Source of the DNA: Dimorphilus gyrociliatus | Lineage: Eukaryota; Animalia; Annelida | Assembly (NCBI GenBank): GCA_904063045.1 | Contig: CAJFCJ010000019.1 | Span: 2,309,700-2,373,699 of the forward strand | Length of the DNA stretch: 64,000 nt | Reading direction: 5' to 3' | Shown here: positions 7,305 to 27,455 of the stretch, piece after piece | Position numbering within the stretch: the first letter of the stretch is position 1 | Layout: every line of letters begins with the position of its first letter | Made by a program: the position numbers and the translations under genes | The notes under the pieces: generated by a model | The model's input: the letters and a program-made list of their open reading frames with translations, nothing else | What the model was told of the DNA's origin: nothing | Database searches by the model: none

Positions 7305-8972
7305 TTAAGGCTCTCTTTGATCGGTTTGGAGATGTGTGTCTGAGTCATTTGAAATGATTTTCCTAGACCTAAGTGTATTGTTATGGTAGCAGGGGCAACA
7401 ACAACAGCAGCAACAATAAACCATATGTGTACAATGAATAATTTCTTCGTGGGATAAACTGCAGTCTGATTCGGATTGTTCATCAGAATAATTAGGTAAA
7501 TTTTCATTTATTTTATCGCTCTTTAAGAAAGTTGTGAAGTTTGTATCTTTACTATTTAACTCATCCCAATCTACTGTAATGGGAATTGTCGATATCTTTG
7601 TTTTAAAGTTAAAGAAACCAAGTGGAAAAGATGTCTCTAACGGCGATAGTAAAATTTCAATTATTGACTGTTCTGTTAAAGTAACTGTTGTTAAAATTGG
7701 TAGATAGTCGTTCAAGTTTATAAGTAATGCAGTTTCCAGCGGACTAAGGAGAATATTTAATTTACGATGTAAGTATTCGTGGGTAATTTTTAAATCAAGA
7801 TATATGTTCTCCGCTTTAATCTCTTCTTTAACTTTCCACTTATTCGTGTTCAAATTATACATAGGTTGATCCAATTTTGAAGTAAATAGTTTATTGGGGG
7901 TGCTCAGAGGAGACATTAACAAATTCAATAAATCGTTATCTTCCCTATCCGATTCGCTTTGAAAAGATTTTATAAAACTCGAATCCTTATTCAAAGGTAA
8001 TTCATCATCAATTTTAAAGAAATCGAATGGCTGTAAAAGCGCTTCGATAATAGGCCTTTTAATTCTAGGCTCAATTATTGCAGGTTTCTGGGAAATATTC
8101 TCGTCATTGCTTTTAGAGTCTAGACACGTAACAAAGTAATTTTCTCTTTCCGTCGCAACAATAACAGTGTAATTTTTACTAAAATGTCTTTGTAAAGATT
8201 TTCCTTCATTCGACTGTATTCTATCTGCTTTGATTTGATAAACAAAAGATATAAGGGTAGTTTTAATAGAATATTTTCCTTTCGTACCTACACCCAAATG
8301 AGAACATTTAGAGGAGATATTTCCTTGTAATATCTTCTGATTTTTTTCATATTTTTCATCATTTTTCGCACTTTTTAATGTATTTGTTCTATTATATTGA
8401 TAATTGTATAAATTACATGATTTATCAAGTTGTTCCCCAACAAAACGAGGAGATTTGGCATCATTATTTGTTAATAGAGTTTCATTAAGCTTCTCTTCTA
8501 ATATTGATATTTTCATTCTAAAGTAATTTTCATTGTCGTTTGAATGAGCGTTCATCTTTTTCATATTAACAGCCGTGGAGTCGTTAGTTAGAATATCGTT
8601 ATCAAATGTTTGAACAGATTTATCGCAATGCTCAATATCATTTAACTCTGATTGAGTAAAGGAGATAACATGTGTAATGTTCTTTGTTTTCTCAACCTCG
8701 CCCATATCTTCATTATTATGTAATTTTAAAGGGAGTACTATTAGTTTACTTTCTACGCTTGTCTTCTCGGAATAGCTATCACTATATTTTTCCAGCTTTA
8801 AGCAATCTTGATCGTTTTTACCATCACTAAAAGTTTGCGTGACATTGTCAATCATTAAGGAATTATTTGCTTGTACAGCCTCGCGAAAAGGTTGGTTTAA
8901 AAGGTCTATTCTTAATAATTTATTAGGTAGTGTAGAATTGACTTTAACATTTTGGAATTGTTTTCCCATCAT
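7305..8972 (-). CDS. Uncharacterised 555-aa low-complexity (N/K/S/D-rich) protein; may be one large exon of a longer gene
   Basis: 1668-nt uninterrupted ORF in AT-rich DNA, too long for chance. Contains repeated [IL]L[LM]SPL[ES]T motifs and a CCCCCCPC tract. Start and extra exons are uncertain. Confidence 0.55.
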   Translation of the reverse strand: MMGKQFQNVKVNSTLPNKLLRIDLLNQPFREAVQANNSLMIDNVTQTFSDGKNDQDCLKLEKYSDSYSEKTSVESKLIVLPLKLHNNEDMGEVEKTKNITHVISFTQSELNDIEHCDKSVQTFDNDILTNDSTAVNMKKMNAHSNDNENYFRMKISILEEKLNETLLTNNDAKSPRFVGEQLDKSCNLYNYQYNRTNTLKSAKNDEKYEKNQKILQGNISSKCSHLGVGTKGKYSIKTTLISFVYQIKADRIQSNEGKSLQRHFSKNYTVIVATERENYFVTCLDSKSNDENISQKPAIIEPRIKRPIIEALLQPFDFFKIDDELPLNKDSSFIKSFQSESDREDNDLLNLLMSPLSTPNKLFTSKLDQPMYNLNTNKWKVKEEIKAENIYLDLKITHEYLHRKLNILLSPLETALLINLNDYLPILTTVTLTEQSIIEILLSPLETSFPLGFFNFKTKISTIPITVDWDELNSKDTNFTTFLKSDKINENLPNYSDEQSESDCSLSHEEIIHCTHMVYCCCCCCCPCYHNNTLRSRKIISNDSDTHLQTDQREP

Positions 8973-22590: not shown

Positions 22591-23615
22591 TATTCTTTTT
22601 TACGATTGCCTTGCCCTCAAAACTCGATGTTTACTCATCAATAACTCTCAAGAAACTGATCCTATAGACAAATGAGATCTGTTTTTATTTACGAAAATAA
22701 TATTTAAATTTATTTACTACATTTATAATATATAGATTACATAAAAATAATTCTTGTTGGTAATTGTTATTTTATACGAAAATATCTTGACGACTTTGTA
22801 AATACACATGGTCATGTGACTGCTTACCTTTTATGGATTCAAATCTGGAGGATGTTTTAATCTTTAATATTCTAGACTAACCTGGAATAAAATTTTACTC
22901 AAAGATACTTAAAAATAAGCAATAAAACTTGAATGTGTAGTTCTTTGAACCAGAATATGTCAATTGCTCTCTCAATTGAAGCCTTTGTTTAATGTATATA
23001 AAGCATTTTAAAACACCACAACTAGTTTAATGAATTTATTACTCGCTAGCTACTAGTGAGTTGACCATCACTATTATATAAATATTAGTACATACATATA
23101 TATCTAATCCACATGACTAATTCAGTCCGCACTATATGAATAATATCCGAAGCCACTCTAGATAAGCTAAAGACTAATACAGTTTATTGGTTTGGTAACT
23201 AAAAAGCAAACGAAAAACTGCTTAGAAGGAAAATTTACCTGAATGGATTTAAAAATAAAGATCGTGTCTTATTTTCAATACGAAAGAGTGTTTCATTCTT
23301 TAAAAATAGCATGAAAAATTTTTGATGAAAGTATAAAATATTAAAAATTTAGAATTTTAATATTACACCTTTTATATTACTATTTTAAAGGTTTGATAGC
23401 TTGAATGGTCTTGAAATTGTATGATATAATAAATGTGATAATAAAAGGTCTAATCATATAGTTATATAATATATTTATATAAATATCAATATACTGTATA
23501 TACTGTATACAGGTGTGTAACACCATTTATTTCTTAGAGCTAAAAGTTAAAATCATAACAAAGTTAGAAACTAAATCAAATTGTCGTATTCTATTCTTTT
23601 CTTCCTAGTAAGTAA

Positions 23616-24208
23616 CTAGTTAAATTCCTTTACGCAATAGCCAGGACCATTTTGAGGTTCGGCTCTAATTCCCCGTCTGGGTTAAACAAATATAATTAGT
23701 CTCTTTTATACGTGATTAATTAACAGTTATTGCTTACCCGACCATTCTGCATCTGTGTTCCTTAAATCTTGGCGTTGCACTTGTTGCATCGGACATTGCT
23801 GAGGAACTCCACAATTTTTCAGCAACAGCACTTGCTCTAGGCCTAACAATTTGTTTTAATTGACGTGTGTTAAATATAATTCTATTTTAAATTACCAAAG
23901 TCTAGAAACAACATTTGAGGTATCAACAAATTCTCCCCATAGAGCTGCTTCACCACCCATTACTAACTTTTTTTGTGCGGCACTGCCTATAAGTAAATGG
24001 TGTTTTCTCGTTTTCATGTCTTATTAAGATTCCTACCTTGCCAATTAAGCGGTTCGCAATTGTAATAAGATGTCCAATCAGTTCCATATGATATATAATC
24101 AAGGTACCAACAAGTGGATAATAATGCTCTATGACCTAAAGCTGTTACCTTGGCAATATCTTGTTGCCATCCCCCTTTCCATACATGCACAACAGTATCT
24201 GGGCGAAC
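23616..24208 (-). CDS. Hexosaminidase C-terminal module B (exons 24208-24037, 23986-23896, 23842-23738, 23676-23616)
   Basis: [26 protein letters not shown]../[22 protein letters not shown]../[39 protein letters not shown]. Exon lengths 172/91/105 are identical to module A; AATAAA at 23531-23526. Confidence 0.9.
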
Positions 24209-26581
24209 CTAAATTTACAAGTGAGCTATTATAATATTAATGTTATTCATATGTTTCATAAAAGCAAATTTTCAAGTCAAAATTAGTGTCGTGAAAGAAA
24301 GATTAAAAGTTCATTATCATTTATTCTCTATAGTATCATTGCAAATACATATCACTGAGTATTATCAAACATATTTAGGGGATAGAATTGAATTCTTGGC
24401 TACAAAATCCTGGTCCACTTAATGGTTCTGCTCTAATGCCTCGTCTGTAGTAAGATTTTAAGAACACCTTATTTTGCTTTAACAGAGACAGGCGTTGATT
24501 TTAAAATAAACCATTTTAATTTACCTTATCATACGACAGCGATTTTCTTCAATTCTAGGTTTTGCCTTATCAGGATTCTTTACGGATTGTGCGCTCCATA
24601 GTCTTTCGGCAACAGCTGAATTCCTAGGCCTATAAAAGATGTTGAAAAAAGCTATTTGGATGAATACTGTATCAGATTTTATAAGCTATTTACCATAGTC
24701 TTGAGATGACGTTAGTAGAATCTACATACTCTCCCCACATGCAAGACTCGCCTCCAATAACTAAATTCTTCTGTTCAGCAGTACCTTAACATTAATTAAT
24801 GATGTTAATACTTTTCTAGCTCGAAGAAGTTTCTCACCTTCGAAATCCCATGGATCACATGAATAATACTTAGTCCAATCGCCTCCGTAGCTAATATAAT
24901 TTAGGTACCAGCAAGATGAAAGTATAGTTCTTAAGCCTTTCTTGGTGACTTTAGCTAACTCATCTTGATATCCACCTTTCCAAATTTCAACGACCGTGTC
25001 TGGTCTTACCTTTCAGACACTAATAATGACTCTTAAAGCTAAGAAAATCAGATATAACCTACTTTTACACCGTTATCTACAACTTCTTGCCAAATGATAT
25101 ATCCTGCATTTAGTTTTGCCATAATATTGAGTAATCTTTTGAAAGAAAAGAATAAATTAATATTATATATTATCTTATTTTCACTAAGATAGCTTAATTA
25201 TTTATTTAAAGCGATAGGGATAAATATGTATCTACCTTTGTTCGTAGTATTGTTCCAATCTTGAATAGTTTCCAGGGAAACCATGCTGTTGCATAAATTT
25301 TGTAATATCCGGATTACTTTTCCTATGAGAATGTGTATTAAAGTTTGAAAATAATGTTTGAAAATCGAACAAAAGGGATTTACTTACCAACAATCAAAAG
25401 ACACTTCGTCACCTCCCATATGTGTATATTTATCTGGGAATACTTGTTGAACTTCTGAAAAAAAACCTTCCAGGAATGTATATGTAGTGTTTACAATTGG
25501 ATTAATAGGTCCAAAATTTCCGTTTGGCTTTCCCTGACTATAACATTCTGTTAAGAGACCTTTTTGTCCCTTTCCCCAAGATTGAGAATGGCCTGGAGTA
25601 TCATATTCGGGTATGACTCTAATACCTCTTACACGAGCAAATTCAATAATTTCAGCAACGTCATTTTGAGTATAGATGTGAGTGAAACGATTGTAAGCAC
25701 CTTCGTCACTAAGCTTAGGATATTTACGACTTTGATAGGGAAATGATTGATCATCTACGATATGCCAATGAAAAACGTTCATTTTATTATAAGCCATTGC
25801 CTCCTGTTTAAAATTATTGCATTTTTATGAAATCCAGGTGATGTTTTTTATTGCAAGAACCTACAATGTTCTCCTTGATAACCTCTTTCGATAAATAGTG
25901 ACGAGATGTATCTAATAGCACACCTCTGTGGGAGAATCGGGGAAAGTCGACAATCTTCGTAGCGTTCAAGAGAAACTGTTAAAATTAAAAAAAAATCCGG
26001 CTTAGCAAGTGAAAAATTAATAGCATTAATGTATTGATCTCTTGTTTTACTTCGCCATAGTTGCCTCGATAAACCAGCTGGCTGAAAGTTTCCAAACCTC
26101 GAAGAATTCCCCATATAGTTGGAGATGCAAGATTGGCTGTCGAGGATGTAACGGTCAAGGTATCTAGTATAAAAAGATAAAAAGAATTATTTTTAGTCTT
26201 ATCAGCTAAGGGCGTATCTGCCTAACAATTCTCTTTCATTTCCAGAGATGGGTATTTTTCGCATTCATTCATCAAGTTGACGTCCAAATTAGCTAGGACA
26301 TTTACATTTGATTTAGGTCTAAATTTTAAAGCATTCGAAGGTCCAAAAATTATTAGTCTATATCGTCTGATAGCATCTTGAAGTATATCACAGCTATGGC
26401 CAACAGGACTAAGGTTGAAAGTTGCAGAATTAAGAAGAAGTAAATCTGGATAAGATTGATAGCTTTGAGGCATCGGCCATGGTTGTCCCAATGTTTGTCC
26501 TGGAGGTGCATTTACAGCCTCCACTGACAGATGAGACTCAAAAAAAGCTACAATTAACAACACCGTCAAGCACCGATGCAT
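23616..26581 (-). CDS. HEXB: Beta-hexosaminidase (GH20, HEXA/HEXB family) with two alternative C-terminal 4-exon modules
   Basis: Signal peptide [14 protein letters not shown].., [48 protein letters not shown] and catalytic HMGGDEV. Shared exons run down to 25063, then module A (25009-24375) or module B (24208-23616). Symbol denotes the family; orthology to HEXA versus HEXB is not resolved. Confidence 0.95.
24375..25009 (-). CDS. Hexosaminidase C-terminal module A (exons 25009-24838, 24784-24694, 24629-24525, 24444-24375)
   Basis: [26 protein letters not shown]../[22 protein letters not shown]../[44 protein letters not shown] flanks; AATAAA at 24325-24320. Confidence 0.9.
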
Positions 26582-26742
26582 ATTTTGTTGTAGAATGACT
26601 GTCACATGACAGTCACCTGGTTTAGTCACATGATTCAATACCATATGAAAGATATAGATGGCGTTACGAAAAAATTCGTAGTCATTGATAGATTGAATGT
26701 TATGCGTAAATTTAGGAAATTACAACAATATTTTTTTAAAAA

Positions 26743-27455
26743 ATGATACGTTTCGGACTTTTATTAGGAATATTAAATTCGATGTTAATTCTTATTTCAA
26801 AAACCGTCTGTTCGGAGATTGATATAAGGAGATGGAGCGAAGGAACTGGATTCCACAGGTTATTATCAAATTTACTTGATTAGAGCATTTAAAAAATTAC
26901 CGATAATTCTGTCATTTATTTTAAAAGGACTTTGTCATATGTAATTCAAGTAAATGGAAGAAATTGCTCCGTTTTTATCGAACAAGTGCTCCCATCTGGT
27001 GCATACATTGATAATCATGAATTAAAACGTTTAGGAATTAATGTAAGCTAATTGAAAGTTTAGAAGTTAATTTCTAATTATTTATAATATATATTTAGGC
27101 AAGCGTTAAAGGGTTAGTTGATATTGAAGCTCCGGAGTTTTCCGCTGATTTCCATACAATGGAGATCTACCAGAAAACTTCGGATTATGGAAACCTACTG
27201 TTGAATATACCCGTCCACTTACGCTATCACATTTCAACGAATGGAGGAAAGAGAGTCGAAATTTTTCTGTCGCAATCGAATGTTCATGTAGAATGTTCGA
27301 AAGGGCGATCTTGGAATAGAACAGTAAAATCTGAATCATTCCAAATTCCAACAGGAAACTTAAACGATTCAAACACTGTAATTGTGGGAACGTGCATGTG
27401 TTCAACACTTTCGCTTTTCATTGTATTATATGGAATTTATTCTTCAAACAATTAA
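26743..27455 (+). CDS. PIGX: GPI mannosyltransferase I stabilising subunit PIG-X/PBN1, 3 exons
   Basis: Signal peptide MIRFGLLLGILNSMLILIS, then GTGFHR / QVLPSGAYIDNHEL / DIEAPEF / PVHLRYH and a C-terminal TM (VIVGTCMCSTLSLFIVLYGIY). These match PIG-X motifs GFHR, P.G.Y.D..EL, DIEAP and P.H.RYH. Confidence 0.85.

Follow-up and report, generated by a model that had tools for sequence, protein, structure and literature searches.

The two subunit types of vertebrate beta-hexosaminidase (HEX) are encoded by two whole genes, HEXA and HEXB. Another arrangement that yields two related products is known from unc-60 (ADF/cofilin) of C. elegans and from the Drosophila aldolase gene, in which shared 5' exons and one promoter serve tandem homologous sets of 3' exons, each set with its own poly(A) site. 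In the insect genes Dscam1, 14-3-3zeta and Mhc, duplicated exons are selected by competing or looping-out intronic RNA pairing. Here we describe a GH20 beta-hexosaminidase gene of the annelid Dimorphilus gyrociliatus. It lies in a 64,000-nucleotide (nt) stretch of assembly GCA_904063045.1 (contig CAJFCJ010000019.1, positions 2,309,700 to 2,373,699 of the forward strand), which we call the window and whose first letter is position 1. In place of the two vertebrate genes there is one gene with alternative modules: six shared exons are followed by two tandem four-exon modules, A and B. The gene belongs with the tandemly duplicated alternative 3' exon sets of which unc-60 and aldolase are examples. 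Those two genes encode other protein families, unlike the Dimorphilus gene, whose exchange point lies inside the catalytic TIM barrel, so that each module must complete the same active site.

We conclude, with a probability of roughly 0.85, that this is one lysosomal-type GH20 gene in which a tandem four-exon duplicate gives two isoforms sharing residues 1-385, by means of alternative splicing and alternative polyadenylation. Joining of exon 6 to A1, followed by the stop codon and poly(A) site of module A, yields a subunit of 530 amino acids (aa); joining of exon 6 to B1, followed by the stop codon and poly(A) site of module B, yields one of 527 aa. The two subunits are predicted to have diverged in function, and the RNA switch that we propose for the choice between them is speculative.

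Gene architecture and transcripts of both modules

The gene is complete and is read from the minus strand, as are all the features of it given below. Shared exons 1-6 (26581-26227, 26163-26051, 25975-25865, 25803-25388, 25322-25236 and 25135-25063) encode residues 1-385 and end in phase 0. They comprise a signal peptide, the GH20b domain at the N-terminus and the beginning of the catalytic barrel, in which the catalytic pair D325-E326 lies. Module A (25009-24838, 24784-24694, 24629-24525 and 24444-24375, including TAA) adds 145 aa, and module B (24208-24037, 23986-23896, 23842-23738 and 23676-23616, including TAG) adds 142 aa. The first three exons measure 172, 91 and 105 nt in A and in B, with identical phases. 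All introns are bounded by GT..AG and are 50-100 nt long, with the exception of the 854-nt intron that reaches B1. From the exon 6 donor (25063), either a 53-nt intron leads to A1 or this 854-nt intron, which encloses all of module A, leads to B1. The stop codon of A and the acceptor of B are 165 nt apart, and an AATAAA poly(A) signal follows each module (24325-24320 after A, 23531-23526 after B). Protein identity between the modules is 62% (88/142), and DNA identity is 55-65%, depending on the exon. No further copy of a module, of the shared exons or of any other part of the gene was found within the 64-kb window.

This layout had been proposed in a first-pass annotation made from the letters of the sequence, and our rebuilt gene model bore it out in full: the order of the modules, the exon lengths and phases, the stops, both AATAAA signals, the 165-nt gap and the 854-nt intron. 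The manual estimate given there was 63-65% identity for the first two exon pairs, and the WYLN of module A and the WYLD of module B were read in the model as WYLNY (Asn422, codon 24901-24899) and WYLDY (Asp422, codon 24100-24098). Profile searches matched PF00728 (Glyco_hydro_20) to exon 4 at E 5.5e-45, and A1 and B1 both matched profile positions 232-276; a sequence search with exon 4, made without a profile, returned HEX proteins of animals. PF14845 scored under its curated cut-off on exon 1 (21 vs 27 bits); the precomputed Pfam domains of the isoform B protein (P0192) are PF14845 and PF00728. The last four exons of the gene are the equivalents of exons 11-14 of human HEXA and HEXB, duplicated in tandem long ago.

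Transcripts of the gene were sought in assembled contigs of four sequencing runs, which were aligned to positions 22900-26750 of the window. X1 is a metatranscriptome of a coral tank from 2024; X2 dates from 2017 and bears the label of a different organism; X4 belongs to the genome study and dates from 2020; X3, for which an independent Logan assembly was used, is the probable DNA source of the genome assembly. The joint between exon 6 and B1 (24206/25061, 854 nt skipped, GT..AG) was present in X1, X2 and X4. In X1 it lay, with a side of 75, inside one contig of 1591 nt that runs from 26560 across exons 1-6 and B1-B4. The joint between exon 6 and A1 (53 nt skipped) was present in X2 and X4. 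The internal joints of A and of B were all found in X1, X2 and X4, as were the five junctions of the shared exons, in RNA contigs of the same three runs. The DNA run X3 had no splice joints. Thus the two alternative junctions that the first-pass annotation had named for checking, 25063-25009 and 25063-24208, both occur in RNA-derived contigs and neither occurs in the DNA run.

The same annotation had predicted 3' ends near 24300 and 23500. The X2 contig of module A ended at 24309, and contigs of module B ended at 23499 (X2) and 23503 (X4). These ends lie a few to about 25 nt downstream of each AATAAA; the contigs do not keep poly(A) tails. The proposal that one locus makes two isoforms by alternative splicing and polyadenylation is therefore upheld, both junctions and separate 3' ends being found in RNA contigs. 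Contig word depth, which gives rough values, stood at B:A = 9.45:4.3 in X1, 3112:1378 in X2 and 176:202 in X4, that is, B at about twice A in two of the three samples. Neither isoform is marginal, and both mRNAs occur at comparable contig depth in three independent samples. One X4 contig was unspliced over 24444-24179, from A4 into B1, which means that some RNA reads through the A cleavage site. Hybrid joints between A and B, which would be in frame, were not listed in any run, though contigs drop rare variants.

The X1 contig differed from the window at eight single bases, all of them in the shared exons (25437-26492). The worm in the coral tank was therefore of a different strain or an independent population.

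Both products are also in the public record. Isoform A is identical to CAD5123530.1 / DgyrCDS11867 (P0318, 530 aa) and isoform B to CAD5123529.1 / DgyrCDS11869 (P0192, 527 aa). In GCA_904063045.1 both coding sequences stand under one gene, whose range of 2966 nt runs exactly from the ATG to the B stop. The gene record on the contig names the longer isoform A only, and protein clustering at 90% places isoform A within the cluster of isoform B. We considered that isoform A might be unannotated and rejected the idea, the members of that cluster including CAD5123530.1, which is isoform A. The two-product gene is thus already in the reference annotation.

Choice between the modules and a candidate RNA helix

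In the strongest inverted repeat of the region, 25045-25003 is complementary to 24303-24254. The upstream arm takes in the last two thirds of the 53-nt intron, the AG of the A1 acceptor and the first 7 nt of A1; the downstream arm lies just past the A cleavage site, 45 nt upstream of the B1 acceptor. The pairing was present in both the minimum-free-energy and the centroid folds of the 871-nt interval, and its duplex energy was -33.1 kcal/mol. Two empirical nulls were set against this value. When random 166-nt pieces of the window were paired with the real acceptor arm, 4 of 2476 reached -33.1 kcal/mol, and when random 48-mers were paired with the real spacer, none of 2475 did. The other 11 acceptor regions of the gene gave -9 to -18 kcal/mol. 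The A1 acceptor has a poor pyrimidine tract and follows an intron of 53 nt, and the stretch that would form the downstream arm was present in RNA, in the read-through contig of X4.

A more speculative part of our proposal is that the two isoforms compete kinetically. If the weak A1 acceptor is spliced promptly and cleavage follows at about 24309, isoform A would result. Transcription past 24309 would expose the spacer 24303-24254, which could pair with 25045-25003; with the A1 acceptor hidden in this duplex and module A looped out, exon 6 would then join B1. We give less than even odds to the predicted masking of the A1 acceptor and looping out of module A by this helix. As in Dscam1, 14-3-3zeta and Mhc, the candidate helix would join regions just before the first and the second alternatives, hiding one acceptor and drawing the other nearer. 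Unlike those systems, it is a single predicted helix in one species, and here the choice of poly(A) site is also involved.

The competing explanation, to which we lean slightly, is that the isoforms are chosen without RNA structure, by the strength of splice sites or poly(A) sites, by the rate of elongation or by trans-acting factors, and that the complementarity is fortuitous. As a rule, alternative last exons operate with no helix of this kind. The AT content of the genome is high, the helix was a post hoc find, and the 871-nt fold as a whole was no stabler than its shuffles (z 0.25). A fortuitous match is harder to reconcile with a duplex that is an outlier against both nulls and against the 11 other acceptors, and with the placement of the arms on the A1 acceptor and just past the A cleavage site.

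Age and predicted function of the modules, and their relation to HEXA and HEXB

Comparison of A with B gave a proportion of differing synonymous sites (pS) of 0.88, which is saturated, a proportion of differing nonsynonymous sites (pN) of 0.26 and an identity at third positions of 34%. The ratio of the corresponding rates (dN/dS) is not computable, dS being saturated, and we give only that pN is far below pS. Saturated synonymous sites beside a pN of 0.26 mark the duplication as old and show that purifying selection has acted on A and B alike.

Conservation across 68 other animal HEX proteins reaches 90% or more at 54 columns of the module, of which 52 are retained in A and 49 in B. These conserved columns, together with a pN of 0.26 against a pS of 0.88, show that the modules are no chance pattern. 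Where A and B differ, the consensus residue is in A 25 times, in B 13 times and in neither 17 times, and of 189 homologues, 164 gave the higher score with A. Module B is therefore the more derived copy. Nonetheless, the columns that are invariant across 50 animal sequences (both isoforms included) are all kept in A and in B. In the shared part they comprise R173, D210, H265, D325-E326 and W376, which we take to correspond to human beta R211, D240, H294, D354-E355 and W405. In each module they comprise W395, Y420, W459 and E461, which align with human beta W424, Y450, W489 and E491. A Tyr equivalent to human beta Y456 is present in both modules.

AlphaFold2 modelled both isoforms with high confidence (mean predicted local distance difference test score 89.2 for isoform A and 90.4 for isoform B), and the order of secondary-structure elements within the module was the same. 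Compared with human Hex chains (2gjx, 1o7a, 1nou and 3lmy), the models had template-modelling (TM) scores of 0.95-0.96 and root-mean-square deviations of 1.1-1.5 Å. From the alignments and models we infer that each module completes the (beta/alpha)8 barrel and carries the pocket residues equal to human beta W424, Y450, D452/L453, W489 and E491. On this basis the isoforms should differ in substrate preference, through Asn422 in A and Asp422 in B, at the position on which the acceptance of 6-sulfated or anionic substrates depends in human Hex.

In human Hex, the segment equivalent to the modules carries much of the subunit interface, as the modules presumably do too. The isoforms may thus differ in dimer stability or in choice of partner, and AA, AB and BB dimers are possible. 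Residue 482 of module B is Lys, where the 68 other animal HEX proteins have Arg (human beta R505 / alpha R504); mutations of this Arg in the human subunits affect stability or subunit association. Human Hex monomers are inactive, the enzyme being an obligate dimer in which the active site is stabilised by the partner subunit (PMC4774620).

It is improbable, in our estimate, that only one module gives a working enzyme and that the other reflects noise of splicing or polyadenylation or is a decaying duplicate. Such a view could appeal to the five columns of at least 90% conservation from which B departs, among them the Arg to Lys change at the equivalent of beta R505, and to the 164 of 189 homologues that are closer to A than to B, the function of both subunits being a prediction. 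But a decaying or useless copy would hardly combine saturated synonymous sites with 62% protein identity, and frames and splice sites are intact in all eight module exons. All invariant GH20 columns are kept in both modules, both isoforms model confidently, and their mRNAs are of comparable contig depth.

The first-pass annotation had read module A as alpha-like and module B as beta-like. This stands at one position, the Asn of A and the Asp of B, which correspond to human alpha N423 and beta D452; the rest of the claim is not supported. Module A scored 176.7 bits on human beta and 176.0 on alpha, and module B 159.0 on beta and 158.0 on alpha. Taken singly, the exons gave no consistent pattern, A1 and B1 favouring beta, A2 alpha and A3 beta, and the motifs that had been quoted as alpha-like or beta-like are mostly the general animal consensus of the 68 other HEX proteins. 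The pocket pair is Asn-Tyr in A and Asp-Tyr in B, and the alpha-type pair Asn423-Arg424 is in neither, which confirms the earlier reading of Tyr instead of Arg at the 424/453 position of both modules. The WYLDY of module B aligns with WYLDL of the human chain (449-453 of 3lmy_A), its next residue being Tyr and not Leu. In human Hex, beta Asp452 disfavours 6-sulfated substrates and alpha Arg424 binds them (PMC8162980). Across the animal HEX proteins scanned, the two commonest states of the pocket pair were NY (64) and DY (60). Because the DY state is so widespread in animals, the Asp of module B is no sign of beta orthology.

In the module tree, A and B were not sisters, but the backbone was weak, and the approximately unbiased (AU) test did not reject an A+B clade (p 0.365). 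The sampled vertebrates, which were of HEXB type only and included no true HEXA, formed one starred clade with tunicates as sister, and neither module fell inside it. The shared part grouped with P0176 (91 in the Shimodaira-Hasegawa-like approximate likelihood ratio test, SH-aLRT), and module B grouped weakly with the same sequences. We also considered a fusion of two old paralogues; the phylogenetic signal was too weak to argue for it.

That A and B are the annelid counterparts of HEXA and HEXB, an ancient split kept in the form of modules, is accordingly very unlikely. The idea draws on WYLN in A as an alpha feature and WYLD in B as a beta feature, and on the separation of A from B in the module tree. 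It runs against the equal scores of each module on human alpha and beta, the preference of A1 and B1 alike for beta, the absence of either module from the HEXB-type vertebrate clade and the failure of the AU test to reject A and B as sisters; exon copies, moreover, are mostly nearest to each other within a species, and NY and DY are simply the commonest animal states. On the sequences compared, the resemblance between A/B and HEXA/HEXB is best taken as a functional parallel at one site and not as homology of the split. In both cases two subunit types of the same fold, about 60% identical, are told apart by Asn or Asp in the pocket and, by prediction in Dimorphilus, by the interface, and the last four exons are conserved in structure (172-183/91/105 nt). 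Homo- and heterodimers would be possible in principle in both, the pairing in Dimorphilus being a prediction. Unlike vertebrate HEXA, neither Dimorphilus module has Arg424 or the alpha loop.

The sampled 31-mers of 23480-25140 were all (100%) present in the DNA run X3, and a 46-kb contig of that run was collinear over the whole stretch with zero differences. An assembly artefact in which two full-length paralogues had been collapsed into one locus found no support and can be set aside almost entirely, for although X3 may be the source sample of the assembly itself, its contig is collinear, one RNA contig of 1591 nt joins exons 1-6 to B1-B4, the public gene model spans both modules, and a second copy of the shared exons is absent from the 64-kb window. 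Because the exon 6-B1 joint is in the RNA of X1, X2 and X4 and the DNA contig is collinear, module B is neither an unexpressed partial duplicate nor the result of a misassembly, two of the outcomes that the first-pass annotation had named as refuting its proposal.

Several points weigh against our reading of one gene with two functional isoforms. The RNA evidence consists of assembled contigs rather than reads, so that depths are rough and rare hybrids would escape, and X2 and X4 carry no RNA label and were judged to be RNA from their spliced contigs. The short side of the joint was 31 nt for exon 6-A1, and 28-30 nt for exon 6-B1 in X2 and X4; short sides of 28-31 nt are what a branch of an assembly graph produces, though they are short. 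The functional difference and the heterodimers are predictions, and the interface is placed by reference to human Hex. With the alpha Arg missing from both modules, the effect of Asn vs Asp by itself is uncertain. The helix is a post hoc find in one species, and by the time the spacer is transcribed the 53-nt intron may often have been removed already.

Homologous exons in other animals, the neighbouring gene and significance

The exon equivalent to A1 and B1 is duplicated in other animals. In Mya, Pecten and Crassostrea, annotated isoforms are alike except for about 57 aa, a block that is this equivalent. The HEX locus of Mya arenaria (L005:11486-14376) has four tandem copies of the exon, reading WYLSD, WYLDY, WYVNI and WYVNY, which match the NCBI isoforms X1-X4. 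The HEX locus of Capitella teleta (L004:8683-9682) has copies at 8683 (WYLNR), 8935 (decayed, with stop codons), 9248 (WYLDY) and 9512 (WYLNY), all of them after AG acceptors; only the 9248 copy is in the public protein examined. In hexb of Conger conger, two copies (L001:7137-7319 and 8311-8493), reading WYLDY and WYLNR and about 55% identical, alternate in two products that are otherwise identical (P0236 and P0266). The exon copies in Mya, Capitella and Conger have AG acceptors, and their 3' boundaries are at the same position and phase. The alpha-type Asn-Arg pair is found on one of the exon copies in Capitella and in teleost hexb. From the two Conger products, a single teleost hexb gene may supply beta-like as well as alpha-like subunits. 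Since copies within a species are mostly each other's nearest, recurrent duplication or homogenisation is indicated.

In about a dozen fish models, from about ten fishes, as well as in the frog Gastrophryne and the clam Mya arenaria, both exon copies are read in tandem (P0216, P0221, P0241, P0242, P0278-P0280, P0286, P0291, P0203, P0209 and P0194). These gene models, which are about 50-100 aa too long, are probably annotation errors that result from the exon duplication.

The single-exon clusters of Capitella, Mya and Conger share with the Dimorphilus gene the gene family, the exon boundaries and phase, and the pocket loop that is varied. They differ in that the downstream exons and one poly(A) site are common to all products there, whereas in Dimorphilus a four-exon block reaching to the end of the gene is exchanged, each copy with its own stop and poly(A) site, so that 145 aa are replaced instead of about 57. 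As exon copies within a species are mostly closest to one another, the Dimorphilus modules and the single-exon clusters look like separate duplications. Among close relatives, whole-protein searches returned no protein of more than about 62% identity beyond the gene's own products, and a search with exon A1 returned five short fragments only, the best of them 76% identical. The nearest full-length relatives (P0173, P0176 and P0171) are transcript contigs without genomic context.

We put forward tentatively, as a view that could well be wrong, that tandem duplication and alternative splicing have repeatedly struck the specificity-loop and interface segment of HEX in annelids, bivalves, teleosts and possibly a frog, and that many animals build sets like HexA, HexB and HexS from one gene; Dimorphilus would then be the extreme case, in which alternative last-exon modules replace the entire C-terminal third and the choice is made by a long-range RNA helix over the acceptor of the first module.

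The literature search found no publication on hexosaminidase genes whose exons are duplicated or used alternatively, splicing of teleost hexb and hexa included, and none on the HEX exon clusters of Capitella, bivalves or Conger; a search on the aldolase precedent likewise gave no useful result. The genome paper of Dimorphilus gyrociliatus does not mention the two-product hexosaminidase gene. One paper lists hexb among the differentially spliced genes of a reef fish and gives no detail. The first-pass annotation's remark that no description was known therefore holds for the papers searched, but both proteins had been deposited, and homologous alternative exons are annotated in other animals.

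A gene of the PIG-X family lies on the plus strand at about 26630-27455 (L006:3127-3952), in head-to-head orientation to the hexosaminidase gene, with only 49 nt between the two start codons. A contig of X2 that holds the 5' part of the hexosaminidase gene continues into the PIG-X gene for over 1 kb; either the transcripts overlap, it would seem, or the two genes share a very small promoter. The Dimorphilus gyrociliatus genome is compact, with a median intron of 66 bp (PMC7854359).

Taken together, these data make the Dimorphilus gene a variant of a widespread and apparently undescribed theme, with alternative last-exon modules rather than mutually exclusive internal exons. In a very compact genome, it is a transcript-supported case of a multi-exon alternative 3' module, with a candidate RNA switch. 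Humans obtain their isozymes from two hexosaminidase genes that have diverged mostly in this segment, whereas the Dimorphilus gene, together with the exon clusters of bivalves and fish and the presumably alternative ones of Capitella, shows a one-gene route by splicing. Catalogues that keep one product per gene can drop one subunit type at this gene, and in teleosts a knock-out of hexb, or a morpholino directed at it, may eliminate alpha-like and beta-like subunits at once. The natural pair of A and B offers a compact system for the effects of Asn vs Asp, and of the interface, on the specificity and dimerisation of GH20 enzymes.

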